From Haliotis cracherodii (taxonomy: Eukaryota), in contig NW_027266330.1 in the NCBI RefSeq assembly GCF_022045235.1, positions 31,620,001 to 31,684,000 on the forward strand: a DNA stretch of 64,000 nt, given 5' to 3'. How positions within the stretch are numbered: position 1 is the stretch's first letter; each line of letters begins with the position of its first letter. Shown piece by piece: positions 1,670 through 32,564 of the stretch. The notes under the pieces are model-generated. The model saw only the letters and a list, made by a program, of their open reading frames with translations. It was not told the DNA's origin and did not search any database. Made by a program: the position numbers and the translations under genes.

Positions 1670-1967
1670 TTGATCAATCCCGATTTAATCAATTAACAAT
1701 GATTGATAATCCCTGGAGATAACAGGACTAGATTGGTTGAACTCTTCTCAGACCTCTCCCTTTATACGGAAACTTGTTTTGACAAGAAGTTGATTGGTTT
1801 CTCAAGTGGACAGTGAGATTCCTTTCGGATCAAAGCCGAATGAAGTTGTAGTGTAGCTTTGATCTCGCCACTGGCTTCGAAAATGCTCTCTTTGATCTAT
1901 AAATCTCTACTACTATGTTTATACTAAGGGTCAGTATAAATGTTTTGCACGGACTGGAGTCCTTCAC
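1670..1967 (+). promoter_or_regulatory. Array-gene promoter now fused to LINE A1: ATTGG 1732 and 1793, CTTTGATC-type sites 1828/1857/1890, TATAAA 1935, Inr TTCAC with A+1 at ~1966
   Basis: Same sequence as the promoters of intact units. The left TSD keeps the Inr. Confidence 0.7.
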
Positions 1968-2259
1968 ATCACATGCCTCCCCCATGGAAACTCAACCAGC
2001 TAAACCTAATCCAACCCATGACGAAGATTTCTCCACTACTGAGGAAACAATAGACACTACTCCAACTAAAACAAACCAAACTTCCCAACCAGCCAACACC
2101 CCAAACCTAAATAACCTCACCTTACTCCTAGCATATATGCATAGTCAAAACTCACCAAAAGCTAGTATGGAATCCTTCCACAAAGTAGCTTTCAATCTAA
2201 AATTAACCGATCTTCCCTTCTTCCTCTTTAACCTCCATCTAAAAGAACTCACCGAATAA
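1968..2259 (+). pseudogene. Truncated ORF1 C-terminal remnant of LINE A1
   Basis: Matches the 3' end of ORF1 of copy A2 (SHASPMETQ...LKELTE*). Confidence 0.9.
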
Positions 2260-2278
2260 AATAAAAACTAAAAACTAA

Positions 2279-5200
2279 ATCACCAATCACCCGAACCCAA
2301 TATTCGAAGGACTAAATATTTTTCAGTGGAACGCCAACGGACTCACCTCCCACGGCCATGAACTAAAAACTAAATTTAAACTAAATAAAGGCCCTCACAT
2401 TGCTTGTATACAGGAAACCAAATTCTCAAAAAAATCGAAATTCACACTACCTAACTACAACTCAGTTAGAACTGACAGAGCTAAACCGAAAACAAGAAGA
2501 GCCGCAGGAGGACTAATCATATTTATCAGGGAAGATATAAATTACGAAGAAATAAAAATAGACACGCCAAACCTAGAAGCCAACGGCATTAAAATCACAT
2601 TAAATAACCGAAACATAAACATCATAAATATTTACCACTGGGCGGAACAAAAAGTCCAACCTGAGGATCTAAACAAACTACTCAAAATAAGCGATAAATC
2701 TACTATATTCCTAGGAGACTTTAACGCTCACCATCCTACATGGAGCATAGATGATAAAATAGATAATCATGGCAAATTAATCTCCGAATGGATAGAAACA
2801 AACGACCTAGTACTCCTTAATAGCAACCAACCCACGAGGTACGATAAGATAAACCAAAAAATGTCGGCTATCGACCTAACCATATGCACCGCAGATCTAG
2901 CCCAAAGCACTCAATGGGAAGTGCACGACGTCCCGCTAGGTAGCGACCACTTCCCCATAAACATAACCATAGGAAATACAAACGTACCAATCCAAACAGA
3001 AAACCAAGAACCAAAATTCCATTACAACAAAGCTAACTGGGACCAATTCCAAGATATCTGCAACGAAGCTAACTTAAACGAAATAGAAAATAATGATCCA
3101 GAAACCTATTGTAAAAACCTAACAGACTATATAATAAACGCAGCCAAAACCTCCATCCCCTTCAAAGTATCTAAGACAGGCAAACCGACGGTACCATGGT
3201 GGAATGAGGAAATAGAACAGACTAGACGAAAACGTAAATCAGCCTTCAATAAAGCGAAACGCGACTACAAATATTTAAACATAGCCCACGAACTAAACCA
3301 CCAGGTTCAAAAACTAGTCCAAATAGCCAAAAGTAGAGACTGGAAAAAATTCTGCGAAGGTATAAATAACCGTACAGATGCCAGAACGGTCTGGCGCAAA
3401 ATCCACGCCATTAGAGGCTTAAAACGACAAAAAAAAAACCCTAACATTAACAACTCAACCAACCCCGCCCAAAAAGCAAATAATCTCGCCAACCACTTTT
3501 CGGCCGTTAGCAGTAACAGCAACTTCAGCCAAAAATTCCAAGATAAACTTAAAACAGAAAACAAACCCACAAAAGAACCAAACAATAACAATCTAGAAAT
3601 AAATCAACCCTACACAATGGAGGAGCTCCTCTACGTAATCCAAAACAGGAAAAAGGGCACAGCCCCAGGATTAGACCTAACCTCTTACCAAATAATTAAA
3701 AAACTCCCCCTAAAACTGCTCCAGGCAGTACTCAAACTATACAATCTCATCTACCTAAACGGACAGGTTCCTACACCCTGGAAACAGGCCCTAGTCATAC
3801 CAATCCCTAAACCTAATAAACCAGCTAATCAAGCTAACTCATATAGACCAATATCCCTAACTTCAAACTTATGTAAAGTAATGGAATCAATGGTTAAAAA
3901 TAGATTACAACATTACTTAACCCAAAATAACACCATAAACCCAGATCAAAGCGGTTTCACTCCTGGCCGCTCAACCCTAGATAACCTCGCCCGACTAGAA
4001 CAAGATATTAAGACAGGACAACTAAATAAACAATATACCACAGGCATCTTCTTAGACTTCTCTAAAGCTTTCGACATGGTATGGCACGATGGGCTAATAC
4101 AAAAACTTAAAAAAATAGGACTCAAAGGTCAGATAATAAACTACATCCAGGACTACCTAAACAATCGTAAAATAACCGTGTGTATAGACCAAACTCTATC
4201 GGACCAATGTCCCCTAGAAAATGGCACTCCACAGGGCAGTATCCTCAGCCCCACCCTCTTCAATATAATGATAAACGATCTATTCGAGGGTCTATCCCCT
4301 AAAGTAAACACATCAAAATTCGCGGATGATGGAGCCATCTGGATCCGCACTAAAAGCATGAAAATGGCCACAAATCTACTCCAAAAATCTCTTAATAAAA
4401 TACAACAATGGGCTGACAAATGGGGCTTCTCCCTTAACTCAGAAAAAACAACAGGAATAGTATTCAAACATAAAAACATGAAACCCGCCTCCCCAATCCT
4501 CCAGCTAAACAACCAAACAATCAAATTTCAAAAACAAACCAAATTCTTAGGACTTATTTTCGATGAACATCTCACCTGGGATGCTCACATCCAAAACCTA
4601 ACAACTAAATGCAGTAAAGACCTAAACACCCTAAGATGCCTAACTGGCTCTAACTGGGGAGCCTCCAAAGATACTCTCCTCTCTCTCTACATATCCCTAA
4701 TTAGATCAAAACTAGACTACGGCTGCGCCATATACAACACCCTAAACAACTCTCTATCCAAAAAACTTGACTCAATACAATATCAGGCTCTCAAACTCAT
4801 TACACGCACCCAACATGGCACCTCCTACACCTCACTTCAGGCCTTAACAGGAGAAATGCCACTAAGTCTACGCAGGGAACAGCTAAGCTTAAATTTCTGG
4901 GCCGCGTCCCAATCAAACCCTCTCATCCAAAACTTAATAAACCAAAACATCAGCCCTAAAAACCAAGCTCTAGCTCGTAAACACCCCTTACTTACCCCAA
5001 TATCCCAAAGAATAACAAACTACCTAAATGAACACCAAATTAAAAATCTTAAACAAAACTGCAAACAATCAAATATCTTCACCCCTAAACTTAAAATACC
5101 CAAAATAGACACAACACTAGCTAGCCAAATAAATAAACAAACCGACCCAAACATAGCTAAAACTACCACACTAGCATACATACACAAAAATTGGCCAAAT

Positions 5201-6061
5201 TGGTGTCACATTTACACGGACGGATCCTCAGATCCGACCTCCAAACACACGGGTTTCGGAGTCCATACCACACAACCAACTAAAACCACACAATCCTTCC
5301 GACTCCCAAATAACCAATCAATATTCACGGCCGAACTAATGGGCATGGCCTCAGCCCTCCACAATCAAGAATCCAAAAACAACCAAAAAATCCTAATACT
5401 TACTGACTCCCTAAGTGGACTACAAGCCCTCCAAAACAAAAATACTAAAAACCGACCTAAATTAATAAATCAAATACTTAAAAGCTCCAACGACCTAACA
5501 AAAGCAGGCAAACAAATAACCTTCTTGTGGATACCCGCCCACGTAGGAATATACGGTAATGAAAACGCCGATAAAGCAGCTAAACTATCCCTTAAAATCC
5601 CAGAAATAAGCTTAAACTTACCCATCTCAAAAACAGAAATTAAAAGTGTAAACAAACAAAAAATCACAAAAAAATGGCATAACCTATATCTAAACTCAAA
5701 TAGCAAAATCAAAAGAGTGCTCAGCAAACCACTAACCAAACCAAAAATTCTCCATCCATCAAAAAAAATCGACAGAGTAATCACTAAACTCCAAACAGGA
5801 CACACCAACCTAAATAACCACCTAAAAAATTTTAAAAAACACACTACAGGTAACTGCCCACACTGCAAACAACCAGAAACCCCAGAACACGCACTCATCC
5901 ACTGCACACACTACCTAACACATCGAACCGCATTACAAACCACCCTCAATCTAAACAAGGCTCTCACTCTAGAAGCAATACTAAACCCACAAAATAAACT
6001 AGAAAACTTCAAGGCCTTAGGCGTATTCTTAATAAAAACGGAACTAATAAAACGCATCTAA
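2279..6061 (+). CDS. LINE ORF2 polyprotein: AP-endonuclease, reverse transcriptase, RNase H, C-terminal CX2CX7HX4C. Frame open from 2279; no ATG until 2861
   Basis: Manual translation upstream of 2861 gives FEGLNIFQWNANGL...CIQETK...LGDFNAHH in frame. Then SDH, YRPISLTS, LDFSKAFD, PQGSILSP, FADD, YTDGS, TDSLS, WIPAHVGIYGNENAD, CPHC...H...C. Confidence 0.93.
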   Translation: MTNHPNPIFEGLNIFQWNANGLTSHGHELKTKFKLNKGPHIACIQETKFSKKSKFTLPNYNSVRTDRAKPKTRRAAGGLIIFIREDINYEEIKIDTPNLEANGIKITLNNRNINIINIYHWAEQKVQPEDLNKLLKISDKSTIFLGDFNAHHPTWSIDDKIDNHGKLISEWIETNDLVLLNSNQPTRYDKINQKMSAIDLTICTADLAQSTQWEVHDVPLGSDHFPINITIGNTNVPIQTENQEPKFHYNKANWDQFQDICNEANLNEIENNDPETYCKNLTDYIINAAKTSIPFKVSKTGKPTVPWWNEEIEQTRRKRKSAFNKAKRDYKYLNIAHELNHQVQKLVQIAKSRDWKKFCEGINNRTDARTVWRKIHAIRGLKRQKKNPNINNSTNPAQKANNLANHFSAVSSNSNFSQKFQDKLKTENKPTKEPNNNNLEINQPYTMEELLYVIQNRKKGTAPGLDLTSYQIIKKLPLKLLQAVLKLYNLIYLNGQVPTPWKQALVIPIPKPNKPANQANSYRPISLTSNLCKVMESMVKNRLQHYLTQNNTINPDQSGFTPGRSTLDNLARLEQDIKTGQLNKQYTTGIFLDFSKAFDMVWHDGLIQKLKKIGLKGQIINYIQDYLNNRKITVCIDQTLSDQCPLENGTPQGSILSPTLFNIMINDLFEGLSPKVNTSKFADDGAIWIRTKSMKMATNLLQKSLNKIQQWADKWGFSLNSEKTTGIVFKHKNMKPASPILQLNNQTIKFQKQTKFLGLIFDEHLTWDAHIQNLTTKCSKDLNTLRCLTGSNWGASKDTLLSLYISLIRSKLDYGCAIYNTLNNSLSKKLDSIQYQALKLITRTQHGTSYTSLQALTGEMPLSLRREQLSLNFWAASQSNPLIQNLINQNISPKNQALARKHPLLTPISQRITNYLNEHQIKNLKQNCKQSNIFTPKLKIPKIDTTLASQINKQTDPNIAKTTTLAYIHKNWPNWCHIYTDGSSDPTSKHTGFGVHTTQPTKTTQSFRLPNNQSIFTAELMGMASALHNQESKNNQKILILTDSLSGLQALQNKNTKNRPKLINQILKSSNDLTKAGKQITFLWIPAHVGIYGNENADKAAKLSLKIPEISLNLPISKTEIKSVNKQKITKKWHNLYLNSNSKIKRVLSKPLTKPKILHPSKKIDRVITKLQTGHTNLNNHLKNFKKHTTGNCPHCKQPETPEHALIHCTHYLTHRTALQTTLNLNKALTLEAILNPQNKLENFKALGVFLIKTELIKRI

Positions 6062-6468
6062 AACCATAATAACCTACCAAATCAAAATCACATAAACAAA
6101 CAATCATCCACCATACCCAGCTCCCTTAGTTCTCCTCCCCAACCCCATCAGCATCTATTCCAAATCTCAAAATTCCCAAATTCTATATAAGCAACCCCTA
6201 AAGCCCCCTCTTGGGTTGCACAGACCACCCTCGCCCCTTTCGGAAACACATTAAATGGCCTGGCCGGGCCCGTGTGCGAAATACGCATCAGTCGGAAAGC
6301 GCACGTTAAATCTCCAAAGTAAGTAAGTAAGTAAGTGGAGTCCTTCACTGCATCTCAATCCGTGAGAACGAACACATCTACTTTCCAATTATCTAAATTT
6401 GGCGCTACTGAATTCCTGTAGTATTACATCCGACTGCATTCTAGTGTTGTGTCCGAAGGCCCTAGAAC

Positions 6469-7090
6469 ATGGATCCAGTTCAAGTTGCCATCAAGCTGAG
6501 ACGACTCCTTATTGCCCACGACAATGCAGTGAAAGAGATCCTGACATTAGGTAAATATGAACTGTGCTCTTTTTCAGTCCCCTGCAAACATTGCAATATT
6601 GGTATCACACTGAATTTTAGAATTGAACAAAATAAAATGATATTGTTGTGAACACATTTACCGAGATTTCTAATTACCCGTTTTATTGTTTTCAGATACC
6701 CAAGTCTACCATCTGATGCGGAAGATGACAGCCAACTCCTCCAACAACTGCATAATCCGAGGTGAACAGCTGATCCAGAGATGATGGGTGCTGGAAGGTG
6801 TCAAGGAGATGTTTACCATCTACAGACAACTCAAGTGGCAAGAGGTGCAAGCCTGTGTAAACGCCATCACCAAAGATGCTTCTGGAGAGAGTGATTCGGA
6901 GGCGGACTGGAATGGAGATACCTCTTTCAATGACGATGAAGCTTCCTTCACGGAACTCTTGTCCGACAGCTCATATAGTGAGGACGACGAAGACCAGGGA
7001 GACCTATACAGCAACGACAGCAGCTACGATATGACGACTCTCAGTCGAGCTTTGTCTGTAGACGACAGTGCACTTCATAGAAACGCCTAA
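6469..7090 (+). pseudogene. Array gene copy with nonsense mutation R57* and separated from its promoter by LINE A1 (intron 6551-6695)
   Basis: CGA>TGA at 6782-6784; all other complete copies read CGA. Confidence 0.85.
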
Positions 7091-8589
7091 GAGAAATCAC
7101 AAGTCCCATCCACATCAACTAGTGCTGCATTTACCTTGTTATTCATTTTTTGTAATTGTACACAAATGTTGCCTGACAGTGTGCAAAGGGCATCCTCTTA
7201 TATTGTAAACCACATTTGTTTGTTGATGAATATGCTGAGGAAATAAATAATGAAGTCGATATTATAATCTTGATCAGTTGCTGACACGCTCACGACATCT
7301 TGAAGACATCATTCGTATAGAAAGTTTGTGAGAGAGAGAGAGAAAAGGTTAATTTGAGATGGTATCTCACAATACCAAGCCTTCGATCATTTTACTTGGT
7401 TCTGAGTATGGCAATCATTCGAAGATATCGTCCTTAATCTATTCTTTGAAATAGGAAAAGATACAGACTAATCAATTGAAATGAAACACATTAGGTATTG
7501 ATGGAGAAGAAGAGATTCCAAGGTAATGGTTGCACCATAACATTAAATACAGTTTGGAGCGTAGCAATTCGTTTGCCCGTATCCATGCCGATCCTATAGC
7601 AAAAGGATTTAGACAGACGAACCACAACCCCATATGATATTCATCTGAGAGAGATATATGCCAGGTTGAATTTCATATTATCAGAGCATTTAATTGTTTC
7701 TCTTTCCTTTTGAAATGTACATGCCCAAGTGCTTAAGGAGAGAGTCATACATGTTAAAAAGTGTCAATGCATAAAGCATGCAAAACAAAAGGAAATTGAA
7801 ACATTGACATCAACACAGGCCAAATAACATTTTTGATCCAAGTCAGCACTTGATGAATACTATTCCCCTGAAAGCACTAAAAAGTAAAGATCAGAATATC
7901 CTGACATGAAACAGTGGGCATCTTTCAAAAACAATGCTAACAACGTGCTTATGTATATCTAGCAACATACTCCAATTTCCATCATGTGCTTTAACAGCAT
8001 TCTGTATTCAAAGATATAAATCATGACACCGTACTTTGTAATTCTCCCCAAAACATGACAGTTATACACTGAAGATGATGTCTCTAGATCATTTAACATA
8101 CATAAACTTTATTGTACATGCCTATTTATTTATTTATATAGTAACCTTTTAAGTACCCGACGTCCACCCAAAAGCTTCTAAGATGGTAAATATCCAGATA
8201 CTTAAGCCAAATGAGCTGCTTCAATTATACCATGATGATGGTATTCATCAAAAATAGTATTTGAAATGCTTCAAAACATACGTGCTGTATTTCGATCATG
8301 TAAGACTGGTTGGGAAAATGGTCAGATTAACATAGCATTTACGACCTCCAACAGATGTGTACAATAAGTTCCAGATTTGACTGTACATGTATTCACTTTG
8401 CCTTTGTCTACCTGATTAAGGATTTTTTTTAGGAATGTGGACATGGTTTTCTCGGGTTTTTTAATTGAAACTAAACGTTCAGAGAAGCATCAGACGATTT
8501 CCAAGCTGATAGAAGTTTCTGTGACTTGGTTTCTGTGGAAGCGAAAGTAACCACATCGGATTTTTAAGTAACACAATGTACTGCACCGT

Positions 8590-8890
8590 TTGATCAATCC
8601 CGATTTAATCAATTAACAATGATTGATAATCCCTGGAGATAACAGGACTAGATTGGTTGAACTCTTCTCAGACCTCTCCCTTTATACGGAAACTTGTTTT
8701 GACAAGAAGTTGATTGGTTTCTCAAGTGGACAGTGAGATTCCTTTCGGATCAAAGCCGAATGAAGTTGTAGTGTAGCTTTGATCTCGCCACTGGCTTCGA
8801 AAATGCTCTCTTTGATCTATAAATCTCTACTACTATGTTTATACTAAGGGTCAGTATAAATGTTTTGCACGGACTGGAGTCCTTCACTGC
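8590..8890 (+). promoter_or_regulatory. Representative intact promoter (repeated in every unit): homeodomain/Sox-like cluster ~8592-8632, inverted CCAAT 8652 and 8713, TCF/LEF-type sites 8748-8755, 8777-8784, 8810-8817, TATAAA 8818 and 8855, Inr TTCACT with A at 8886
   Basis: TATA-to-Inr spacing is 31 nt. A 122-nt ATG-free leader leads to a Kozak-like AACATGG. Motif matches were read directly; the TSS is inferred. Confidence 0.7.
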
Positions 8891-9007
8891 ATCTCAATCC
8901 GTGAGAACGAACACATCTACTTTCCAATTATCTAAATTTGGCGCTACTGAATTCCTGTAGTATTACATCCGACTGCATTCTAGTGTTGTGTCCGAAGGCC
9001 CTAGAAC

Positions 9008-9629
9008 ATGGATCCAGTTCAAGTTGCCATCAAGCTGAGACGACTCCTTATTGCCCACGACAATGCAGTGAAAGAGATCCTGACATTAGGTAAATATGAA
9101 CTGTGCTCTTTTTCAGTCCCCTGCAAACATTGCAATATTGGTATCACACTGAATTTTAGAATTGAACAAAATAAAATGATATTGTTGTGAACACATTTAC
9201 CGAGATTTCTAATTACCCGTTTTATTGTTTTCAGATACCCAAGTCTACCATCTGATGCGGAAGATGACAGCCAACTCCTCCAACAACTGCATAATCCGAG
9301 GTGAACAGCTGATCCAGAGACGATGGGTGCTGGAAGGTGTCAAGGAGATGTTTACCATCTACAGACAACTCAAGTGGCAAGAGGTGCAAGCCTGTGTAAA
9401 CGCCATCACCAAAGATGCTTCTGGAGAGAGTGATTCGGAGGCGGACTGGAATGGAGATACCTCTTTCAATGACGATGAAGCTTCCTTCACGGAACTCTTG
9501 TCCGACAGCTCATATAGTGAGGACGACGAAGACCAGGGAGACCTATACAGCAACGACAGCAGCTACGATATGACGACTCTCAGTCGAGCTTTGTCTGTAG
9601 ACGACAGTGCACTTCATAGAAACGCCTAA
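9008..9629 (+). CDS. Uncharacterised 158-aa protein, two exons (9008-9089, 9235-9629), intron 9090-9234
   Basis: Donor AG|GTAAAT, branch CTAAT, pyrimidine tract TTTTATTGTTTTCAG. Splicing joins MDPV...EILTL-D-TQVYHL... in frame (phase 1). Confidence 0.88.
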
Positions 9630-11546
9630 GAGAAATCACAAGTCCCATCCACATCAACTAGTGCTGCATTTACCTTGTTATTCATTTTTTGTAATTGTAC
9701 ACAAATGTTGCCTGACAGTGTGCAAAGGGCATCCTCTTATATTGTAAACCACATTTGTTTGTTGATGAATATGCTGAGGAAATAAATAATGAAGTCGATA
9801 TTATAATCTTGATCAGTTGCTGACACGCTCACGACATCTTGAAGACATCATTCGTATAGAAAGTTTGAGAGAGAGAGAGAGAAAAGGTTAATTTGAGATG
9901 GTATCTCACAATACCAAGCCTTCGATCATTTTACTTGGTTCTGAGTATGGCAATCATTCGAAGATATCGTCCTTAATCTATTCTTTGAAATAGGAAAAGA
10001 TACAGACTAATCAATTGAAATGAAACACATTAGGTATTGATGGAGAAGAAGAGATTCCAATGTAATGGTTGCACCATAACATTAAATACAGTTTGGAGCG
10101 TAGCAATTCGTTTGCCCGTATCCATGCCGATCCTATAGCAAAAGGATTTAGACAGACGAACCACAACCCCATATGATATTCATCTGAGAGAGATATATGC
10201 CAGGTTGAATTTCATATTATCAGAGCATTTAATTGTTTCTCTTTCCTTTTGAAATGTACATGCCCAAGTGCTTAAGGAGAGAGTCATACATGTTAAAAAG
10301 TGTCAATGCATACAGCATGCAAAACAAAAGGAAATTGAAACATTGACATCAACACAGGCCAAATAACATTTTTGATCCAAGTCAGCACTTGATGAATACT
10401 ATTCCCCTGAAAGCACTAAAAAGTAAAGATCAGAATATCCTGACATGAAACAGTGGGCATCTTTCAAAAACAATGCTAACAACGTGCTTATGTATATCTA
10501 GCAACATACTCCAATTTCCATCATGTGCTTTAACAGCATTCTGTATTCAAAGATATAAATCATGACACCGTACTTTGTAATTCTCCCCAAAACATGACAG
10601 TTATACACTGAAGATGATGTCTCTAGATCATTTAACATACATAAACTTTATTGTACATGCCTATTTATTTATTTATATAGTAACCTTTTAAGTACCCGAC
10701 GTCCACCCAAAAGCTTCTAAGATGGTAAATATCCAGATACTTAAGCCAAATGAGCTGCTTCAATTATACCATGATGATGGTATTCATCAAAAATAGTATT
10801 TGAAATGCTTCAAAACATACGTGCTGTATTTCGATCATGTAAGACTGGTTGGGAAAATGGTCAGATTAACATAGCATTTACGACCTCCAACAGATGTGTA
10901 CAATAAGTTCCAGATTTGACTGTACATGTATTCACTTTGCCTTTGTCTACCTGATTAAGGATTTTTTTTAGGATTGTGGACATGGTTTTCTCGAGTTTTT
11001 TAATTGAAACTAAACGTTCAGAGAAGCATCAGACGATTTCCAAGCTGATAGAAGTTTCTGTGACTTGGTTTCTGTGGAAGCGAAAGTAACCACATCGGAT
11101 TTTTAAGTAACACAATGTACTGCACCGTTTGATCAATCCCGATTTAATCAATTAACAATGATTGATAATCCCTGGAGATAACAGGACTAGATTGGTTGAA
11201 CTCTTCTCAGACCTCTCCCTTTATACGGAAACTTGTTTTGACAAGAAGTTGATTGGTTTCTCAAGTGGACAGTGAGATTCCTTTCGGATCAAAGCCGAAT
11301 GAAGTTGTAGTGTAGCTTTGATCTCGCCACTGGCTTCGAAAATGCTCTCTTTGATCTATAAATCTCTACTACTATGTTTATACTAAGGGTCAGTATAAAT
11401 GTTTTGCACGGACTGGAGTCCTTCACTGCATCTCAATCCGTGAGAACGAACACATCTACTTTCCAATTATCTAAATTTGGCGCTACTGAATTCCTGTAGT
11501 ATTACATCCGACTGCATTCTAGTGTTGTGTCCGAAGGCCCTAGAAC

Positions 11547-12168
11547 ATGGATCCAGTTCAAGTTGCCATCAAGCTGAGACGACTCCTTATTGCCCACGAC
11601 AATGCAGTGAAAGAGATCCTGACATTAGGTAAATATGAACTGTGCTCTTTTTCAGTCCCCTGCAAACATTGCAATATCGGTATCACACTGAATTTTAGAA
11701 TTGAACAAAATAAAATGATATTGTTGTGAACACATTTACCGAGATTTCTAATTACCCGTTTTATTGTTTTCAGATACCCAAGTCTACCATCTGATGCGGA
11801 AGATGACAGCCAACTCCTCCAACAACTGCATAATCCGAGGTGAACAGCTGATCCAGAGACGATGGGTGCTGGAAGGTGTCAAGGAGATGTTTACCATCTA
11901 CAGACAACTCAAGTGGCAAGAGGTGCAAGCCTGTGTAAACGCCATCACCAAAGATGCTTCTGGAGAGAGTGATTCGGAGGCGGACTGGAATGGAGATACC
12001 TCTTTCAATGACGATGAAGCTTCCTTCACGGAACTCTTGTCCGACAGCTCATATAGTGAGGACGACGAAGACCAGGGAGACCTATACAGCAACGACAGCA
12101 GCTACGATATGACGACTCTCAGTCGAGCTTTGTCTGTAGACGACAGTGCACTTCATAGAAACGCCTAA
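11547..12168 (+). CDS. Array gene copy, 158 aa (intron 11629-11773)
   Basis: Same structure as the 9008 copy. Confidence 0.88.
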
Positions 12169-21694: not shown

Positions 21695-22316
21695 ATGGAT
21701 CCAGTTCAAGTTGCCATCAAGCTGAGACGACTCCTTATTGCCCACGACAATGCAGTGAAAGAGATCCTGACATTAGGTAAATATGAACTGTGCTCTTTTT
21801 CAGTCCCCTGCAAAAATTGCAATATCGGTATCACACTGAATTTTAGAATTGAACAAAATAAAATGATATTGTTGTGAACACATTTACCGAGATTTCTAAT
21901 TACCCGTTTTATTGTTTTCAGATACCCAAGTCTACCATCTGATGCGGAAGATGACAGCCAACTCCTCCAACAACTGCATAATCCGAGGTGAACAGCTGAT
22001 CCAGAGACGATGGGTGCTGGAAGGTGTCAAGGAGATGTTTACCATCTACAGACAACTCAAGTGGCAAGAGGTGCAAGCCTGTGTAAACGCCATCACCAAA
22101 GATGCTTCTGGAGAGAGTGATTCGGAGGCGGACTGGAATGGAGATACCTCTTTCAATGACGATGAAGCTTCCTTCACGGAACTCTTGTCCGACAGCTCAT
22201 ATAGTGAGGACGACGAAGACCAGGGAGACCTATACAGCAACGACAGCAGCTACGATATGACGACTCTCAGTCGAGCTTTGTCTGTAGACGACAGTGCACT
22301 TCATAGAAACGCCTAA
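21695..22316 (+). CDS. Array gene copy, 158 aa (intron 21777-21921)
   Basis: Same structure as the 9008 copy. Confidence 0.88.
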
Positions 22317-24230
22317 GAGAAATCACAAGTCCCATCCACATCAACTAGTGCTGCATTTACCTTGTTATTCATTTTTTGTTATTGTACACAAATGTTGCCT
22401 GACAGTGTGCAAAGGGCATCCTATTATATTGTAAACCACATTTGTTTGTTGATGAATATGCTGAGGAAATAAATAATGAAGTCGATATTATAATCTTGAT
22501 CATTTGCTGACACGCTCACGACATCTTGAAGACATCATTCGTATAGAAAGTTTGTGAGAGAGAGAGAGAGAAAAGGTTAATTTGAGATGGTATCTCACAA
22601 TACCAAGCCTTCGATCATTTTACTTGGTTCTGAGTATGGCAATCATTCGAAGATATCGTCCTTAATCTATTCTTTGAAATAGGAAAAGATACAGACTAAT
22701 CAATTGAAATGAAACACGTTAGGTATTGATGGAGAAGAGATTCCAATGTAATGGTTGCACCATAACATTAAATACAGTTTGGAGCGTTGCAATTCGTTTG
22801 CCCGTATCCATGCCGATCCTATAGCAAAAGGATTTAGACAGACGAACCACAACCCCATATGATATTCATCTGAGAGAGATATATGCCAGATGGAATTTCA
22901 TATTATCAGAGCATTTAATTGTTTCTCTTTCCTTTTGAAATGTACATGCCCAAGTGCTTAAGGAGAGAGTCATACATGTTAAAAAGTGTCAATGCATACA
23001 GCATGCAAAACAAAAGGAAATTGAAACATTGACATCAACACAGGCCAAATAACATTTTTGATCCAAGTCAGCACTTGATGAATACTATTCCCCTGAAAGC
23101 ACTAAAAAGTAAAGATCAGAATATCCTGACATGAAACAGTGGGCATCTTTCAAAAACAATGCTAACAACGTGCTTATGTTTATCTAGCAACATACTCCAA
23201 TTTCCATCATGTGCTTTAACAGTATTCTGTATTCAAAGATATAAATCATGACACCGTGCTTTGTAATTCTCCCCAAAACATGACAGTTATACACTGAAGA
23301 TGATGTCTCTAGATCATTTAACATACATAAACTTTATTGTACATGCCTATTTATTTATTTATATAGTAACCTTTTAAGTACCCGACGTCCACCCAAAAGC
23401 TTCTAAGATGGTAAATATCCGGATACTTAAGCCAAATGAGCTGCTTCAATTATACCATGATGATGGTATTCATCAAAAATAGTATTTGAAATGCTTCAAA
23501 ACATACGTGCTGTATTTCGATCATGTAAGACGGGTTGGGAAAATGGTCAGATTAACATAGCATTTACGACCTCAAACAGATGTGTACAATAAGTTCCAGA
23601 TTTGACTGTACATGTCTTCACTTTGCCTTTGCCTACCTGATTAAGGATTTTTTAGGATTGTGGACATGGTTTTCTCGGCTTTTTTAATTGAAACTAAACG
23701 TTCAGAGAAGCATCAGACGATTTCCAAGCTGATAGAAGTTTCTGTGACTTGGTTTCTGTGGAAGCGAAAGTAACCACATCGGATTTTTAAGTAACACAAT
23801 GTACTGCACCGTTTGATCAATCCCGATTTAATCAATTAACAATGATTGATAATCCCTGGAGATAACAGGACTAGATTGGTTGAACTCTTCTCAGACCTCT
23901 CCCTTTATACGGAAACTTGTTTTGACAAGAAGTTGATTGGTTTCTCAAGTGGACAGTGAGATTCCTTTCGGATCAAAGCCTAATGAAGTTGTAGTGTAGC
24001 TTTGATCTCGCCACTGGCTTCGAAAATGCTCTCTTTGATCTATAAATCTCTACTACTATGTTTATACTAAGGGTCAGTATAAATGTTTTGCACGGACTGG
24101 AGTCCTTCACTGCATCTCAATCCGTGAGAACGAACACATCTACTTTCCAATTATCTAAATTTGGCGCTACTGAATTCCTGTAGTATTACATCCGACTGCA
24201 TTCTAGTGTTGTGTCCGAAGGCCCTAGAAC

Positions 24231-24852
24231 ATGGATCCAGTTCAAGTTGCCATCAAGCTGAGACGACTCCTTATTGCCCACGACAATGCAGTGAAAGAGA
24301 TCCTGACATTAGGTAAATATGAACTGTGCTCTTTTTCAGTCCCCTGCAAACATTGCAATATCGGTATCACACTGAATTTTAGAATTGAACAAAATAAAAT
24401 GATATTGTTGTGAACACATTTACCGAGATTTCTAATTACCCGTTTTATTGTTTTCAGATACCCAAGTCTACCATCTGATGCGGAAGATGACAGCCAACTC
24501 CTCCAACAACTGCATAATCCGAGGTGAACAGCTGATCCAGAGACGATGGGTGCTGGAAGGTGTCAAGGAGATGTTTACCATCTACAGACAACTCAAGTGG
24601 CAAGAGGTGCAAGCCTGTGTAAACGCCATCACCAAAGATGCTTCTGGAGAGAGTGATTCGGAGGCGGACTGGAATGCAGATACCTCTTTCAATGACGATG
24701 AAGCTTCCTTCACGGAACTCTTGTCCGACAGCTCATATAGTGAGGACGACGAAGACCAGGGAGACCTATACAGCAACGACAGCAGCTACGATATGACGAC
24801 TCTCAGTCGAGCTTTGTCTGTAGACGACAGTGCACTTCATAGAAACGCCTAA
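24231..24852 (+). CDS. Array gene copy, 158 aa, G101A variant (intron 24313-24457)
   Basis: Same structure; WNADT instead of WNGDT. Confidence 0.88.
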
Positions 24853-26729
24853 GAGAAATCACAAGTCCCATCCACATCAACTAGTGCTGCATTTACCTTG
24901 TTATTCATTTTTTGTTATTGTACACAAATGTTGCCTGACAGTGTGCAAAGGGCATTCTATTATATTGTAAACCACATTTGTTTGTTGATGAATATGCTGA
25001 GGAAATAAATAATGAAGTCGATATTATAATCTTGATCATTTGCTGACACGCTCACGACATCTTGAAGACATCATTCGTATAGAAAGTTTGTGAGAGAGAG
25101 AGAGAGAAAAGGTTAATTTGAGATGGTATCTCACAATACCAAGCCTTCGATCATTTTACTTGGTTCTGAGTATGGCAATCATTCGAAGATATCGTCCTTA
25201 ATCTATTCTTTGAAATAGGAAAAGATACAGACTAATCAATTGAAATGAAACACGTTAGGTATTGATGGAGAAGAGATTCCAATGTAATGGTTGCACCATA
25301 ACATTATATACAGTTTGGAGCGTAGCAATTCGTTTGCCCGTATCCATGCCGATCCTATAGCAAAAGGATTTAGACAGACGAACCACAACCCCATATGATA
25401 TTCATCTGAGAGAGATATATGCCAGGTGGAATTTCATTTTATCAGAGCATTTAATTGTTTCTCTTTCCTTTTGAAATGTACATGCCCAAGTGCTTAAGGA
25501 GAGAGTCATACATGTTAAAAAGTGTCAATGCATACAGCATGCAAAACAAAAGGAAATTGAAACATTGACATCAACACAGGCCAAATAACATTTTTGATCC
25601 AAGTCAGCACTTGATGAATACTATTCCCCTGAAAGCACTAAAAAGTAAAGATCAGAATATCCTGACATGAAACAGTGGGCATCTTTCAAAAACAATGCTA
25701 ACAACGTGCTTATGTATATCTAGCAACATACTCCAATTTCCATCATGTGCTTTAACAGCATTCTGTATTCAAAGATATAAATCATGACACCGTGCTTTGT
25801 AATTCTCCCCAAAACATGACAGTTATACACTGAAGATGATGTCTCTAGATCATTTAACATACATAAACTTTATTGTACATGCCTATTTATTTATTTATAT
25901 AGTAACCTTTTAAGTACCCGACGTCCACCCAAAAGCTTCTAAGATGGTAAATATCCAGATACTTAAGCCAAATGAGCTGCTTCAATTATACCATGATGAT
26001 GGTATTCATCAAAAATAGTATTTGAAATGCTTCAAAACATACGTGCTGTATTTCGATCATGTAAGACGGGTTGGGAAAATGGTCAGATTAACATAGCATT
26101 TACGACCTCAAACAGATGTGTACAATAAGTTCCAGATTTGACTGTACATGTCTTCACTTTGCCTTTGCCTACCTGATTAAGGATTTTTTAGGATTGTGGA
26201 CATGTTTTTCTCGGGGTTTTTAATTGAAACTAAACGTTCAGAGAAGCATCAGACGATTTCCAAGCTGATAGAAGTTTCTGTGACTTGGTTTCTGTGGAAG
26301 CGAAAGTAACCACATCGGATTTTTAAGTAACACAATGTACTGCACCGTTTGATCAATCCCGATTTAATCAATTAACAATGATTGATAATCCCTGGAGATA
26401 ACAGGACTAGATTGGTTGAACTCTTCTCAGACCTCTCCCTTTATACGGAAACTTGTTTTGACAAGAAGTTGTTTGGTTTCTCAAGTGGACAGTGAGATTC
26501 CTTTCGGATCAAAGCCTAATGAAGTTGTAGTGTAGCTTTGATCTCGCCACTGGCTTCGAAAATGCTCTCTTTGATCTATAAATCTCTACTACTATGTTTA
26601 TACTAAGGGTCAGTATAAATGTTTTGCACGGACTGGAGTCCACCAAGTAAAAACAACAAACCAACTCACCTCCCCAAAACCACCACCACTCACCACAACA
26701 CACGCTCTCCAACACAACACCCAAACAAT

Positions 26730-28355
26730 ATGACTGACACCCGCAACGCCACACTCGCAGACATTCCAGCTCCTTACTCACCCACGCCTGCGGAAGCGCA
26801 CAACACTTCTGGGAGGTCACTCGAAAACATCGTCCCGACCGAGTATGGCGAAAACACGACATACACCACCCCAACCAAACCAGCTAACTCGCCACCACAA
26901 AACACCAAAAAACGCAAACTCGACACATCCACTCCACCTCCATCGCCAACACCCTCCCCGGCCGCCTTCCTCACCACCTTCGCCCTCTACTTCTTCTCAG
27001 CAGGCTCAGGCACCACTCTCTCACTAGAACTTTCGGCAGACAAAATAGGACTTTGGTTCAAAAGACAAAAAATAAATTACAACAATATTAAAAAAGCCAA
27101 CAAAGGATACCAGATAATCTTTCCTAACCGAGAATCTTACAACGCAGCAAATAAAATAACTCAAATATTCCACGTCACGGTAATCAAACAAACACCTAAT
27201 TGGCAACAATATACACGAGGCGTAATAAGGGTTAACCCAAGGGAAACAACTGAGGACTTACAATTATACTCTCTAGAAGCTAACATAAACCAAGACCAAA
27301 ACCCTCAACCCCTAATCACCAGCACGCGCAGAATAACCTCAACTAGAAACGGAAAAACGGTCCCAACCTCCATTGTCATAATCAACTTTAAAAAAAACGC
27401 TAAATTCCCTGAAGCCCCCAAACACATATCCTTCGGAGCCCACACAAACTTAGAAGTCAAACCCTATATAAAGCAGGTTAAGCAATGTTCAAAGTGCCTC
27501 AAATACAACCACACTGCTTCCCAATGCACCTACCCTAAAACTAAATGTAAAAAATGCGCACAAACAGACTGCCCAGGCACATGCACACCCTGGTGCATCC
27601 ACTGCAAATCCACCCAACACACTTCACTTTCAAACCAATGCCCACACAGACACACACTCACCCAGCAGGCCAACAAACACATAAACATAGAAACGGCTAA
27701 AATCCAAACACGAAAATTTGCTACACCTGCATCTAAACCACTCCTCCCTACACCACACCCAAACACCATCCCACAAACAAACACCACACCCATAACCGAC
27801 AGCTCTGTCTGGGACCCCTACCGAGAAACCGCACCCACCTCACACACACAAGCAGCCACTCAACCAACCACGAACCCTCCCAAAACATCAACCCCCGCAT
27901 GCAAAACAAACCTCAAAATGACCACCACAACACGACCCTCATCCAAGCACCCTACAGCCCATATGGCAACAACGCTCTCCCACAAGCAAGCACAACAACA
28001 AAACACAAACACTAAGAAAACATCAGCTACACCCATCCCGCCAACACCTTCACAACCCTCCACATCACATGCCTCCCCCATGGAAACTCAACCAGCTAAA
28101 CCTAATCCAACCCATGACGAAGATTTCTCCACTACTGAGGAAACAATAGACACTACTCCAACTAAAACAAACCAAACTTCCCAACCAGCCAACACCCCAA
28201 ACCTAAATAACCTCACCTTACTCCTAGCATATATGCATAGTCAAAACTCACCAAAAGCTAGTATGGAATCCTTCCACAAAGTAGCTTTCAATCTAAAATT
28301 AACCGATCTTCCCTTCTTCCTCTTTAACCTCCATCTAAAAGAACTCACCGAATAA
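26730..28355 (+). CDS. LINE ORF1 gag-like nucleic-acid-binding protein, 541 aa
   Basis: First ATG inside the element (MTDTRN...). Knuckles CSKCLKYNHTASQC, CKKCAQTDCPGTC, CIHCKSTQHTSLSNQC; KKRK NLS-like patch; P/T-rich linker. Confidence 0.88.
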   Translation: MTDTRNATLADIPAPYSPTPAEAHNTSGRSLENIVPTEYGENTTYTTPTKPANSPPQNTKKRKLDTSTPPPSPTPSPAAFLTTFALYFFSAGSGTTLSLELSADKIGLWFKRQKINYNNIKKANKGYQIIFPNRESYNAANKITQIFHVTVIKQTPNWQQYTRGVIRVNPRETTEDLQLYSLEANINQDQNPQPLITSTRRITSTRNGKTVPTSIVIINFKKNAKFPEAPKHISFGAHTNLEVKPYIKQVKQCSKCLKYNHTASQCTYPKTKCKKCAQTDCPGTCTPWCIHCKSTQHTSLSNQCPHRHTLTQQANKHINIETAKIQTRKFATPASKPLLPTPHPNTIPQTNTTPITDSSVWDPYRETAPTSHTQAATQPTTNPPKTSTPACKTNLKMTTTTRPSSKHPTAHMATTLSHKQAQQQNTNTKKTSATPIPPTPSQPSTSHASPMETQPAKPNPTHDEDFSTTEETIDTTPTKTNQTSQPANTPNLNNLTLLLAYMHSQNSPKASMESFHKVAFNLKLTDLPFFLFNLHLKELTE

Positions 28356-28374
28356 AATAAAAACTAAAAACTAA

Positions 28375-31300
28375 ATCACCAATCACCCGAACCCAATATT
28401 CGAAGGACTAAATATTTTTCAGTGGAACGCCAATGGACTCACCTCCCACGGCCATGAACTAAAAACTAAATTTAAACTAAATAAAGGCCCTCACATTGCT
28501 TGTATACAGGAAACCAAATTCTCAAAAAAATCGAAATTCACACTACCTAACTACAACTCAGTTAGAACTGACAGAGCTAAACCGAAAACAAGAAGAGCCG
28601 CAGGAGGACTAATCATATTTATCAGGGAAGATATAAATTACGAAGAAATAAAAATAGACACGCCAAACCTAGAAGCCAACGGCATTAAAATCACATTAAA
28701 TAACCGAAACATAAACATCATAAATATTTACCACTGGGCGGAACAAAAAGTCCAACCTGAGGATCTAAACAAACTACTCAAAATAAGCGATAAATCTACT
28801 ATATTCCTAGGAGACTTTAACGCTCACCATCCTACATGGAGCATAGATGATAAAATAGATACTCATGGCAAATTAATCTCCGAATGGATAGAAACAAACG
28901 ACCTAGTACTCCTTAATAGCAACCAACCCACGAGGTACGATAAGATAAACCAAAAAATGTCGGCTATCGACCTAACCATATGCACCGCAGATCTAGCCCA
29001 AAGCACTCAATGGGAAGTGCACGACGTCCCGCTAGGTAGCGACCACTTCCCCATAAACATAACCATAGGAAATACAAACGTACCAATCCAAACAGAAAAC
29101 CAAGAACCAAAATTCCATTACAACAAAGCTAACTGGGACCAATTCCAAGATATCTGCAACGAAGCTAACTTAAACGAAATAGAAAATAATGATCCAGAAA
29201 CCTATTGTAAAAACCTAACAGACTATATAATAAACGCAGCCAAAACCTCCATCCCCTTCAAAGTATCTAAGACAGGCAAACCGACGGTACCATGGTGGAA
29301 TGAGGAAATAGAACAGATTAGACGAAAACGTAAATCAGCCTTCAATAAAGCAAAACGCGACTACAAATATTTAAACATAGCCCACGAACTAAACCACCAG
29401 GTTCAAAAACTAGTCCAAATAGCCAAAAGTAGAGACTGGAAAAAATTCTGCGAAGGTATAAATAACCGTACAGATGCCAGAACGGTCTGGCGCAAAATCC
29501 ACGCCATTAGAGGCTTAAAACGACATAAAAAAAACCCTAACATTAACAACTCAACCAACCCCGCCCAAAAAGCAAATAATCTCGCCAACCACTTTTCGGC
29601 CGTTAGCAGTAACAGCAACTTCAGCCAAAAATTCCAAGATAAACTTAAAACAGAAAACAAACCCACAAAAGAACCAAACAATAACAATCTAGAAATAAAT
29701 CAACCCTACACAATGGAGGAGCTCCTCTACGTAATCCAAAACAGGAAAAAGGGCACAGCCCCAGGATTAGACCTAACCTCTTACCAAATAATTAAAAAAC
29801 TCCCCCTAAAACTGCTCCAGGCACTACTCAAACTATACAATCTCATCTACCTAAACGGACAGGTTCCTACACCCTGGAAACAGGCCCTAGTCATACCAAT
29901 CCCTAAACCTAATAAACCAGCTAATCAAGCTAACTCATATAGACCAATATCCCTAACTTCAAACTTATGTAAAGTAATGGAATCAATGGCTAAAAATAGA
30001 TTACAACATTACTTAACCCAAAATAACACCATAAACCCAGATCAAAGCGGTTTCACTCCTGGCCGCTCAACCCTAGATAACCTCGCCCGACTAGAACAAG
30101 ATATTAAGACAGGACAACTAAATAAACAATATACCACAGGCATCTTCTTAGACTTCTCTAAAGCTTTCGACATGGTATGGCACGATGGGCTAATACGAAA
30201 ACTTAAAAAAATAGGACTCAAAGGTCAGATAATAAACTACATCCAGGACTACCTAAACAATCGTAAAATAACCGTGTGTATAGACCAAACTCTATCGGAC
30301 CAATGTCCCCTAGAAAATGGCACTCCACAGGGCAGTATCCTCAGCCCCACCCTCTTCAATATAATGATAAACGATCTATTCGAGGGTCTATCCCCTAAAG
30401 TAAACACATCAAAATTCGCGGATGATGGAGCCATCTGGATCCGCACTAAAAGCATGAAAATGGCCACAAATCTACTCCAAAAATCTCTTAATAAAATACA
30501 ACAATGGGCTGACAAATGGGGCTTCTCCCTTAACTCAGAAAAAACAACAGGAATAGTATTCAAACATAAAAACATGAAACCCGCCTCCCCAATCCTCCAG
30601 CTAAACAACCAAACAATCAAATTTCAAAAACAAACCAAATTCTTAGGACTTATTTTCGATGAACATCTCACCTGGGATGCTCACATCCAAAACCTAACAA
30701 CTAAATGCAGTAAAGACCTAAACACCCTAAGATGCCTAACTGGCTCTAACTGGGGAGCCTCCAAAGATAATCTCCTCTCTCTCTACATATCCCTAATTAG
30801 ATCAAAACTAGACTACGGCTGCGCCATATACAACACCCTAAACAACTCTCTATCCAAAAAACTTGACTCAATACAATATCAGGCTCTCAAACTCATTACA
30901 CGCACCCAACATGGCACCTCCTACACCTCACTTCAGGCCTTAACAGGAGAAATGCCACTAAGTCTACGCAGGGAACAGCTAAGCTTAAATTTCTGGGCCG
31001 CGTCCCAATCAAACCCTCTCATCCAAAACTTAATAAACCAAAACATCAGCCCTAAAAACCAAGCTCTAGCTCGTAAACACCCCTTACTTACCCCAATATC
31101 CCAAAGAATAACAAACTACCTAAATGAACACCAAATTAAAAATCTTAAACAAAACTGCAAACAATCAAATATCTTCACCCCTAAACTTAAAATACCCAAA
31201 ATAGACACAACACTAGCTAGCCAAATAAATAAACAAACCGACCCAAACATAGCTAAAACTACCACACTAGCATACATACACAAAAATTGGCCAAATTGGT

Positions 31301-32157
31301 GTCACATTTACACGGACGGATCCTCAGATCCGACCTCCAAACACACGGGTTTCGGAGTCCATACCACACAACCAACTAAAACCACACAATCCTTCCGACT
31401 CCCAAATAACCAATCAATATTCACGGCCGAACTAATGGGCATGGCCTCAGCCCTCCACAATCAAGAATCCAAAAACAACCAAAAAATCCTAATACTTACT
31501 GACTCCCTAAGTGGACTACAAGCCCTCCAAAACAAAAATACTAAAAACCGACCTAAATTAATAAATCAAATACTTAAAAGCTCCAACGACCTAACAAAAG
31601 CAGGCAAACAAATAACCTTCTTGTGGATACCCGCCCACGTAGGAATATACGGTAATGAAAACGCCGATAAAGCAGCTAAACTATCCCTTAAAATCCCAGA
31701 AATAAGCTTAAACTTACCCATCTCAAAATCAGAAATTAAAAGTGTAAACAAACAAAAAATCACAAAAAAATGGCATAACCTATATCTAAACTCAAATAGC
31801 AAAATCAAAAGAGTGCTCAGCAAACCACTAACCAAACCAAAAATTCTCCATCCATCAAAAAAAATCGACAGAGTAATCACTAAACTCCAAACAGGACACA
31901 CCAACCTAAATAACCACCTAAAAAAATTTAAAAAACACACTACAGGTAACTGCCCACACTGCAAACAACCAGAAACCCCAGAACACGCACTCATCCACTG
32001 CACACACTACCTAACACATCGAACCGCATTACAAACCACCCTCAATCTAAACAAGGCTCTCACTCTAGAAGCAATACTAAACCCACAAAATAATCTAGAA
32101 AACTTCAAGGCCTTAGGCGTATTCTTAATAAAAACGGAACTAATAAAACGCATCTAA
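28375..32157 (+). CDS. LINE ORF2 (APE-RT-RNaseH-CCHC), intact; no ATG until 28957
   Basis: Same as A1 ORF2 at offset 26096. The EN domain starts FEGLNIFQWN at 28399. Confidence 0.93.
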   Translation: MTNHPNPIFEGLNIFQWNANGLTSHGHELKTKFKLNKGPHIACIQETKFSKKSKFTLPNYNSVRTDRAKPKTRRAAGGLIIFIREDINYEEIKIDTPNLEANGIKITLNNRNINIINIYHWAEQKVQPEDLNKLLKISDKSTIFLGDFNAHHPTWSIDDKIDTHGKLISEWIETNDLVLLNSNQPTRYDKINQKMSAIDLTICTADLAQSTQWEVHDVPLGSDHFPINITIGNTNVPIQTENQEPKFHYNKANWDQFQDICNEANLNEIENNDPETYCKNLTDYIINAAKTSIPFKVSKTGKPTVPWWNEEIEQIRRKRKSAFNKAKRDYKYLNIAHELNHQVQKLVQIAKSRDWKKFCEGINNRTDARTVWRKIHAIRGLKRHKKNPNINNSTNPAQKANNLANHFSAVSSNSNFSQKFQDKLKTENKPTKEPNNNNLEINQPYTMEELLYVIQNRKKGTAPGLDLTSYQIIKKLPLKLLQALLKLYNLIYLNGQVPTPWKQALVIPIPKPNKPANQANSYRPISLTSNLCKVMESMAKNRLQHYLTQNNTINPDQSGFTPGRSTLDNLARLEQDIKTGQLNKQYTTGIFLDFSKAFDMVWHDGLIRKLKKIGLKGQIINYIQDYLNNRKITVCIDQTLSDQCPLENGTPQGSILSPTLFNIMINDLFEGLSPKVNTSKFADDGAIWIRTKSMKMATNLLQKSLNKIQQWADKWGFSLNSEKTTGIVFKHKNMKPASPILQLNNQTIKFQKQTKFLGLIFDEHLTWDAHIQNLTTKCSKDLNTLRCLTGSNWGASKDNLLSLYISLIRSKLDYGCAIYNTLNNSLSKKLDSIQYQALKLITRTQHGTSYTSLQALTGEMPLSLRREQLSLNFWAASQSNPLIQNLINQNISPKNQALARKHPLLTPISQRITNYLNEHQIKNLKQNCKQSNIFTPKLKIPKIDTTLASQINKQTDPNIAKTTTLAYIHKNWPNWCHIYTDGSSDPTSKHTGFGVHTTQPTKTTQSFRLPNNQSIFTAELMGMASALHNQESKNNQKILILTDSLSGLQALQNKNTKNRPKLINQILKSSNDLTKAGKQITFLWIPAHVGIYGNENADKAAKLSLKIPEISLNLPISKSEIKSVNKQKITKKWHNLYLNSNSKIKRVLSKPLTKPKILHPSKKIDRVITKLQTGHTNLNNHLKKFKKHTTGNCPHCKQPETPEHALIHCTHYLTHRTALQTTLNLNKALTLEAILNPQNNLENFKALGVFLIKTELIKRI

Positions 32158-32564
32158 AACCATAATAACCTACCAAATCAAAATCACATAAACAAACAAT
32201 CATCCACCATACCCAGCTCCCTTAGTTCTCCTCCCCAACCCCATCAGCATCTATTCCAAATCTCAAAATTCCCAAATTCTATATAAGCAACCCCTAAAGC
32301 CCCCTCTTGGGTTGCACAGACCACCCTCGCCCCTTTCGGAAACACATTCAATGGCCTGGCCGGGCCCGTGTGCGAAATACGCATCAGTCGGAAAGCGCAC
32401 GTTAAATCTCCAAAGTAAGTAAAAGTAAGTAAGGAGTCCTTCACTGCATCTCAATCCGTGAGAACGAACACATCTACTTTCCAATTATCTAAATTTGGCG
32501 CTACTGAATTCCTGTAGTATTACATCCGACTGCATTCTAGTGTTGTGTCCGAAGGCCCTAGAAA

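Follow-up and report, generated by a model that had tools for sequence, protein, structure and literature searches.

Copies of a young and abundant long interspersed nuclear element (LINE) in the genome of Haliotis cracherodii, here called LINE A, recur at a fixed distance from TATA boxes, in one orientation and at sequences that are otherwise unrelated to each other. The element is described from a window of 64 kb (C67:31620001-31684000) filled by a tandem array, in which two copies, A1 and A2, lie at the same position in the promoter of the repeated unit. The unit measures 2,537 bp (copies 98.8-100% alike) and encodes a small two-exon open reading frame (ORF) without a Pfam family; its promoter consists of a TATAAAT box followed by TGTTTTGCA(C/A)GGACT GGAGTCCTTCACTGC, and the target bond is GGAC(T)^GGAGTCC, that is, TATAAA+14/15 (caret, nick). 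LINE A, its subfamilies and a sister family, LINE B, probably nick DNA past a TATA(A/T)A box, at a distance of 13-15 nt and in promoter orientation. The wider explanation, in which TATA-spaced nicking and reuse of the nick produce both head-to-tail LINE stacks and a hot spot in the array, is one that we hold with good confidence.

Fixed spacing between TATA boxes and LINE insertions

The DNA upstream of ~160 true full-length LINE A 5' termini was listed genome-wide and tested for TATA patterns. Within 5-35 nt of the terminus, TATAWA (W, A or T) gave 63 matches at ~43 of the ~160 termini, with the nearest box at 20-28 nt in ~34 cases and at 5-15 nt in none. The stricter TATAAA occurs in this interval at 12 termini in unique flanks, all of them at 22-28 nt, and 12 of 12 within a 7-nt span of 31 positions has p ~2e-8 under a uniform spread. 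As controls, antisense TTTATA was not found in the same interval of unique flanks (0, versus 12 for the sense hexamer), AAATAT was found 3 times, and TATAWA at 36-66 nt was found 11 times, 7 of these being the second box of one repeat family. Once the observed target-site duplication (TSD) lengths of 7-14 nt are subtracted, these distances place the nick 13-15 nt past the hexamer, matching the geometry of the array. The same TATA+13 to +15 spacing is seen at unrelated targets, namely the array, the LINE B site, two repeats (X and Y) and the 12 unique TATAAA loci. The core promoter, which a sequence-only reading of the window had proposed as what the element aims at, is retained in a broader form, in which the recognised feature appears to be a TATA box at fixed distance in many unrelated promoters.

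LINE B (83% identical to LINE A, with a (CAGY)n-type tail) is inserted ~220 bp upstream of the A site and on the opposite strand, where its flank, read in its own orientation, is TATAAA GGGAGAGGTCTGAG ^ AAGAGTTCAA, with 14 nt between box and nick. Since the unit has just 8 TATAWA hexamers, both strands together, a position at TATAAA+14 is expected by chance with a probability of ~0.5%. A search for full-length ends of the B family found nothing with a 20-mer that was probably too specific.

Repeat X (302 matches) reads TATATA TTCTGCACTATGT ^ CCCTCATTCAGTCTTGC, and repeat Y reads TATATA CTTGCTTACTGCA ^ CTCTGTAAATCACTTGC. Among the first 100 copies of repeat X listed, 20 are broken 8-13 nt past the caret and pass into internal LINE A sequence or foreign DNA, with the nick itself at TATATA+13/15, and repeat Y has the same breakage pattern at TATATA+13. 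Because three repeat X loci show both junctions (Table 1), truncated copies obey the TATA spacing as well. Recurrent 'spacers' that follow LINE A tails, CCCTCATTCA and CTCTGTAAATC, are TSDs at the TATA sites of X and Y. Each of the targets readable across the nick (array, B site, repeats X and Y) has an initiator of the TCA type 7-12 nt past it. Neither repeat X nor repeat Y matches an RNA family in Rfam. Repeat X itself pairs a TATATA box with a TCAGTC initiator and often occurs as close diverging pairs (for example, C1:24476074/24476140 and C5:35587890/35587969).

Stacked insertions are common in this genome. At 21 loci a LINE A tail is followed, after 2-12 nt, by a full-length LINE A 5' end, and in 8 of 39 sampled copies the tail is followed within ~13 nt by another LINE of like orientation. 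The downstream LINE of a stack is full-length or truncated, so the same nick is reused in general, whatever lies downstream. Targeting of internal LINE promoters was rejected as a source of stacks because the downstream partner is often 5'-truncated, and end-to-end template jumping because the recurrent spacers are TSDs at X and Y, although jumping is possible for junctions of 0-3 nt. At C6:21921902, C13:9168316, C23:49086165, C23:50110124 and C45:48589993, a full-length LINE A 5' end is preceded at 8-13 nt by a B-type (CAGT)n tail, and hence the A and B families stack on each other at shared sites.

A proposed mechanism of target choice

The proposed scheme begins with a nick in the transcription-template strand, from which the element would start target-primed reverse transcription. 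This nick would fall ~20 nt from the first T of the TATA box and ~10 nt before the initiator, with the LINE oriented in the direction of TATA-driven transcription. A second-strand cut 7-14 nt beyond the nick would then leave the 5' end of the new copy ~30 nt from the TATA box, at the start expected for that box; TATA plus 14 nt plus a TSD of ~10 nt would set the element's first bases, the initiator-like CAGTT, at this distance. Even 5'-truncated copies would acquire a promoter in this way, and the captured TATA box may actually drive the copies. As insertion leaves both the TATA box and the nick site intact, the same bond would remain usable and head-to-tail stacks would form, and because the 47 unit starts of the array offer 47 identical TATA promoters, they would act as 47 identical best sites and form a hot spot.

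What reads the spacing is the more tentative part of the scheme. The nick would lie close to where promoter melting begins, for which reason the TATA-binding protein (TBP) or the pre-initiation complex, rather than a protein of the element, is put forward as the reader, a proposal to which we give less than an even chance. Recognition of a complex is favoured over that of a bare hexamer because of the TCA-type initiators at the targets and the six further TATAWA hexamers in each unit, which are never used, although the sample for this comparison is small. In its fullest form, the proposal is of a LINE lineage that reads the RNA polymerase II (Pol II) pre-initiation complex, nicks the template at the upstream edge of melting, ~20 bp from TATA, and brings its own initiator to +1 by means of a ~10-bp TSD, each copy, truncated or not, completing a TATA-initiator promoter from host parts. 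This full version may be correct, but we would put it slightly below evens.

Alternatively, a LINE protein (ORF2p outside its APE fold, or ORF1p) could bind TATA(A/T)A directly and cut at a distance like a type IIS enzyme, without TBP or a pre-initiation complex. This would agree with a spacing found alike at TATATA stretches and, in unrelated loci, at TATAAA. However, the six other TATAWA hexamers per unit are unused over 47 units, in which the promoter box has been used nine times, all read-through targets also carry the initiator, and Pfam detected no DNA-binding domain in LINE A beyond the CCHC knuckles. Direct reading of the box is considered unlikely.

Several observations weigh against TATA-spaced nicking as a general account. 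A canonical TATAWA is present at just ~1/4 of the full-length termini; the six idle hexamers of each unit indicate that the hexamer alone is insufficient; the TATA test covers the upstream flanks of full-length termini and, among dispersed 5'-truncated copies, of a minor part only; and distances and counts for TATAWA, TATAAA and repeat X were tallied by eye. Moreover, a T>A change common to A1 and A2 (window 4142-4168 and 30238-30264; C67:31624142 and C67:31650238) is found in no other of ~520 copies and is thus private to the pair, and the LINE load of the array may stem in part from array-borne sources or gene conversion instead of independent sampling.

Nine LINE bodies at one bond of the array

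The array spans ~160 kb of contig C67 (~31,606,800-31,766,700, as seen in 200 kb around the window), and 40 of its 47 forward-orientation unit starts are empty while 7 are occupied by LINE. The start of transcription would lie ~10 nt downstream of the nick, a position placed by TATA geometry alone. Units carry either C or A 6 nt ahead of the nick, and insertions are found in both variants. In two related species, contigs that span the unit have its site empty. The distal array (C67:31691243-31733704) shows a two-unit higher-order pattern and contains units that vary by an indel close to unit position 1000.

Nine LINE A bodies (A0-A8), seven of them besides A1 and A2, are joined to this same bond, and all nine events used a nick of the sense strand. 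The 3' junction is constant across them, whereas the 5' junction and the TSD vary: two copies are full-length with different ends and the others are truncated at ~540, 750, 1420, 2040, 3810, 4360 and 4870, TSDs measure 0, 7, 7-8, 10-11, 11, 12-13 and 22 bp, and tails vary too. Compared as they stand, A1, A2, A4, A6 and A7 diverge mutually by 0.2-0.3%, and A5, A8 and A0 diverge from this group by 0.6-1% and A3 by ~9%, so that the array copies comprise three subfamilies. Duplication of a single event can neither lengthen a TSD nor account for the variety of tails and subfamilies, and several separate target-primed events at this one bond are therefore required. Flanks of LINE-bearing units resemble the neighbouring empty units and not other LINE-bearing units, which makes block duplication improbable; a 26-kb higher-order duplication carrying one LINE was rejected on the same grounds and because unit identity drops with distance.

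Two of the nine bodies are rearranged. In A8 the body was primed on the top strand, 22 nt further downstream, with a forward (TAAG)n tail at the canonical bond; it is inverted and looks like a case of priming on both strands. At the left edge of the array, inverted unit bases 2-186 and the last 1.4 kb of LINE A are joined at the same bond, showing that the inversion happened after LINE insertion.

Relationship between A1 and A2

Both window copies are in sense orientation and joined at GGACT^GGAGTCC, with 3' junctions of (TAAG)4|T GGAGTCCTTCAC for A1 (6335/6336) and TAAGTAAAAGTAAGTAA|GGAGTCC for A2 (32432/32433), the same bond within 1 nt, as the sequence-only reading had reported. Its list of differences between them is likewise confirmed, since they differ in 5' end, TSD (12-13 versus 7 bp), tail, 13 substitutions and flanking unit haplotype. 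The 5' junction of A1 shows imperfect microhomology (target CCTTCAC versus LINE CCTCCAC), indels are found in the tail but none across the 4.3-kb body, and the flanks of each copy show 0-3 differences per kb from its own neighbouring empty units as compared with 7-10 per kb between A1 and A2 flanks.

That reading took these differences as evidence of two independent insertions. The argument is weakened for the pair on which it was built, as A1 and A2 have a private substitution in common and are not independent draws from the LINE A family, but it is rescued by the other array copies, which come from three subfamilies. A second variant of A1 and A2 is found in just 7 copies. Elsewhere A1 is a mosaic relative to A2 and A4, having variants in common with A4, and the allele common to A1 and A4 is found in 45 copies. 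Given a private substitution on the one hand and different unit haplotypes, tails and TSDs on the other, we read A1 and A2 as probable parent and offspring, or siblings, by retrotransposition, or as separate insertions that were later gene-converted. The mosaic structure of A1 together with the private variant suggests either gene conversion between LINE copies within the array or template switching.

These shared variants bear on two further accounts of the hot spot. In one, array-borne copies seed the array, their transcripts carrying a few unit bases past the tail that anneal at the nicked site, without any site preference of the endonuclease. The private substitution, the second variant and the different haplotypes, tails and TSDs of A1 and A2 fit such parent-offspring retrotransposition, but gene conversion explains the private variants equally well, as the mosaic A1 illustrates. 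Nor does seeding explain three subfamilies at one bond, or the TATA spacing at B, X, Y and the unique loci. All apparent TSDs are at most 22 bp, so long read-through is not involved, and outside the array a tail followed by TGGAGTCC was matched 2 times versus 5 in the control, which is not above chance. We regard seeding as quite improbable as the explanation, and homing by 3' read-through from array copies as a minor contributor at most.

In the other account, unequal crossing-over multiplied one or two ancestral insertions, which later deletions remodelled so as to mimic TSDs. A deletion between the upstream CCTTCAC and the LINE's CCTCCAC would exactly reproduce the 12-bp 'TSD' of A1, A7 can be derived by deletion between two GGACT pentamers, and the private variant of A1 and A2 would fit a common origin by this route. 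However, the flanks again match neighbouring empty units and not each other, a short TSD cannot give rise to a long one, tails differ by indels while the A1 and A2 bodies do not, subfamily differences of up to 9% cannot arise by exchange, and the tails primed on both strands and 22-bp TSD of A8 are a signature of retrotransposition. Crossing-over as the source of the nine bodies is very improbable.

Genome-wide distribution of LINE A

Approximately 1,900 copies of LINE A with an intact 3' end are dispersed over many contigs, an estimate based on 1,412 matches to an exact 3'-end pattern that captures ~3/4 of copies. The array holds 9 of these, leaving 99% outside, and an allele of the young subfamily to which A1, A2, A4 and A7 belong is found in 136 copies, 4 of these in the array. 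The last 380 bp of A2, used as query, matched 39 further copies with 99-100% identity; these are spread over many contigs and none has a related flank. Among 139 sampled 3' flanks outside the array (these 39 close copies plus the first 100 listed) none was related to the unit. The 12-mer GGACTGGAGTCC occurs 43 times outside the array without an excess of occupied sites, and GGAGTCC lies within TSD range of one non-array full-length copy only; on these counts both GGAGTCC and the GGACTGGAGTCC palindrome were discarded as a general target.

The near-universal common flank that marks target-specific LINEs was not found among these copies, and LINE A is not sequence-specific for the macrosatellite. 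A site-specific LINE with the macrosatellite as its safe haven, as the sequence-only reading had suggested, does not survive this tabulation of genomic 3' junctions, in which outside flanks are diverse and GGACT^GGAGTCC is not a general target. A strict specificity for GGACT^GGAGTCC would account for the constant 3' and variable 5' junctions within the array, but in view of the ~1,900 dispersed copies, the 0 of 139 related flanks and the unoccupied 12-mers we give it next to no credence.

Reads of sequencing run X21 also show diverse flanks at LINE A 3' ends. On window positions 5900-11899, C>T and G>A changes are strongly over-represented in the reads of this run and most reads fit only in part, resembling a converted or damaged library, and their depth on the unit is unusable. 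LINE A copies whose flanks are identical also lie in a second tandem structure, of ~11.9-kb period (C1:45763633, 45775571, 45787509 and 45788911), with a further copy at the same 11-nt site, CTTGGGGCCCC.

Relation to known systems

LINE target choice is thought to take one of two forms, either a short and near-ubiquitous endonuclease motif or a single conserved multicopy sequence. If true, a TATA-distance rule in promoter orientation would be a third. It would solve how 5'-truncated or promoter-less LINE copies get transcribed and would explain the head-to-tail LINE stacks of this genome; mutation by insertion would fall specifically on TATA-containing genes, and tandem gene arrays would tolerate it best. 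That a host complex could aim an APE-type endonuclease is a testable claim, of practical interest for directing the insertion of long DNA. If the full version of the proposal is right, LINE A would be the first LINE, and to our knowledge the first retroelement, whose position is fixed to the nucleotide by the core-promoter geometry of Pol II, and we know of fixed-distance promoter positioning so far just for RNA polymerase III (Pol III) genes (Ty3 and TRE5-A). The CRE/SLACS elements of trypanosomatid spliced-leader genes insert just past the host promoter of a tandem multicopy gene, which can transcribe the element, but they differ from LINE A in having a restriction-like endonuclease and in targeting the sequence of a single gene. 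A LINE with fixed TATA-box spacing was not found in full-text literature searches, which is not proof of absence.

The long terminal repeat retrotransposon Ty3 of budding yeast integrates at Pol III start sites with TFIIIB, which contains TBP, as its landmark (PMC6673722; PMC5911963). In Ty3, as proposed for LINE A, the geometry of the initiation complex, and not local sequence, determines the exact nucleotide of insertion. However, Ty3 inserts double-stranded cDNA at Pol III genes with an integrase, whereas LINE A is an APE LINE that would make polar copies by target-primed reverse transcription at Pol II-type TATA/initiator promoters. TRE5-A, a non-LTR element of Dictyostelium, targets the TFIIIC/IIIB complex ~50 bp upstream of tRNA genes (PMC3159450, PMC5391098). 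It is a LINE positioned relative to a transcription complex rather than to a sequence, as proposed for LINE A, but it differs from LINE A in using Pol III genes, in a window of a few bp ~50 bp away, and in that its own 5' end is not placed at the host start site.

Target-specific LINEs are reported from early-branching, Tx1 and R1 clades, each in one conserved sequence (PMC4640811). Like R1, TRAS, SART, Keno and Tx1, LINE A has a constant 3' and a variable 5' junction, tandem stacks and multicopy targets (PMC4640811). Nearly all copies of the R1 and Tx1 LINEs lie in one sequence read by the endonuclease, whereas LINE A flanks are unrelated save for the TATA box, and nearly all of its copies lie outside the array. 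De novo insertions of the Drosophila I-element, which like LINE A is an RNase H-bearing APE LINE, are ~2-fold enriched in promoters, following expression, and fall in AT-rich DNA 100-200 bp upstream of starts (PMC10018349). Its promoter preference is weak and broad, with no fixed spacing to a promoter element reported, unlike that of LINE A.

Feature coordinates

Table 1. Positions of LINE copies, target-site duplications and TATA boxes (window positions, unless a contig is named; starts refer to positions in the element)
Feature	Coordinates	Strand	Details
TATAAA box, recipient unit of A1	1935..1940	+	nick 14-15 nt beyond
A1 TSD, 5' copy	1955..1967	+	(T)GGAGTCCTTCAC, 12-13 bp
LINE A1	1968..6335	+	4,368 bp, sense; 5'-truncated at A2 position 1423, starts ~1420
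A1 TSD, 3' copy	6336..6348	+	
Empty site (example)	8855..8887	+	TATAAA TGTTTTGCACGGAC(T)^GGAGTCCTTCAC; 17 empty sites in window, 40 in array
TATAAA box, recipient unit of A2	26614..26619	+	
A2 TSD, 5' copy	26635..26641	+	GGAGTCC, 7 bp
LINE A2	26642..32432	+	5,791 bp, sense; starts ~540
A2 TSD, 3' copy	32433..32439	+	
LINE B TSD copy, tail side	55036..55049	-	
LINE B	55050..59674	-	
LINE B TSD copy, adjoining 5' end	59675..59688	-	
TATAAA box for LINE B	59703..59708	-	exactly 14 nt upstream of nick in B's orientation
A0	C67:31607345-31608964		array left edge; inverted fragment, diverged flank, odd tail
A3			starts ~2040; divergence 10-17% in 5' half, 2-5% in 3' half; TSD 7-8 bp
A4			full length; TSD 10-11 bp
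A5			starts ~750; ~1 kb of target deleted on 5' side; tail abuts A6 5' TSD
A6			full length plus extra 235-bp monomer; TSD 11 bp
A7			starts ~4870; no TSD; 5-nt microhomology
A8	C67:31762747-31764765		inverted body; 21-nt forward tail kept at canonical bond; TSD 22 bp
Repeat X, both junctions	C1:65458612/65459551		~0.9-kb copy; TSD CCCTCATTCA
Repeat X, both junctions	C1:49998526/49998577		~75-bp copy; TSD CTCATTCAGTC
Repeat X, both junctions	C1:62235824/62237008		TSD CTCATTCA

Structure and relatives of LINE A

LINE A ends in a (TAAG)n tail. Its full-length 5' untranslated region (UTR) consists of one or two monomers of ~235 bp, each beginning with CAGTTGCAGTTTGTAC (C67:31701474-31702011 and 31719438-31720215), and about half of the sites in the genome where this 16-mer is found are junctions between monomers inside an element. 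A2 lacks ~540-780 bp of the monomeric 5' UTR present in longer copies. Its ORF1 runs from a first methionine at ~26730 to 28355 and encodes CCHC knuckles, and its ORF2 is an open frame of 1,260 codons (28375-32157) for APE, reverse transcriptase (RT), RNase H and a zinc knuckle; the ORF2 frame of A1 is open as well. Pfam identified RVT_1 and RNase_H in A2 ORF2, the APE motifs were read in frame at 28375-28957, and ORF2 homologues carry PF03372/PF14529 (APE). APE, RT and RNase H in ORF2 make up the domain set of RNase H-bearing APE LINEs (I-group in the broad sense). The best relative in the databases has no name and shares 47% identity. Close relatives P0025 and P0028 are filed as proteins of 'Candidatus Thiodiazotropha' metagenome bins, and these most likely represent host-animal DNA binned with the symbiont.

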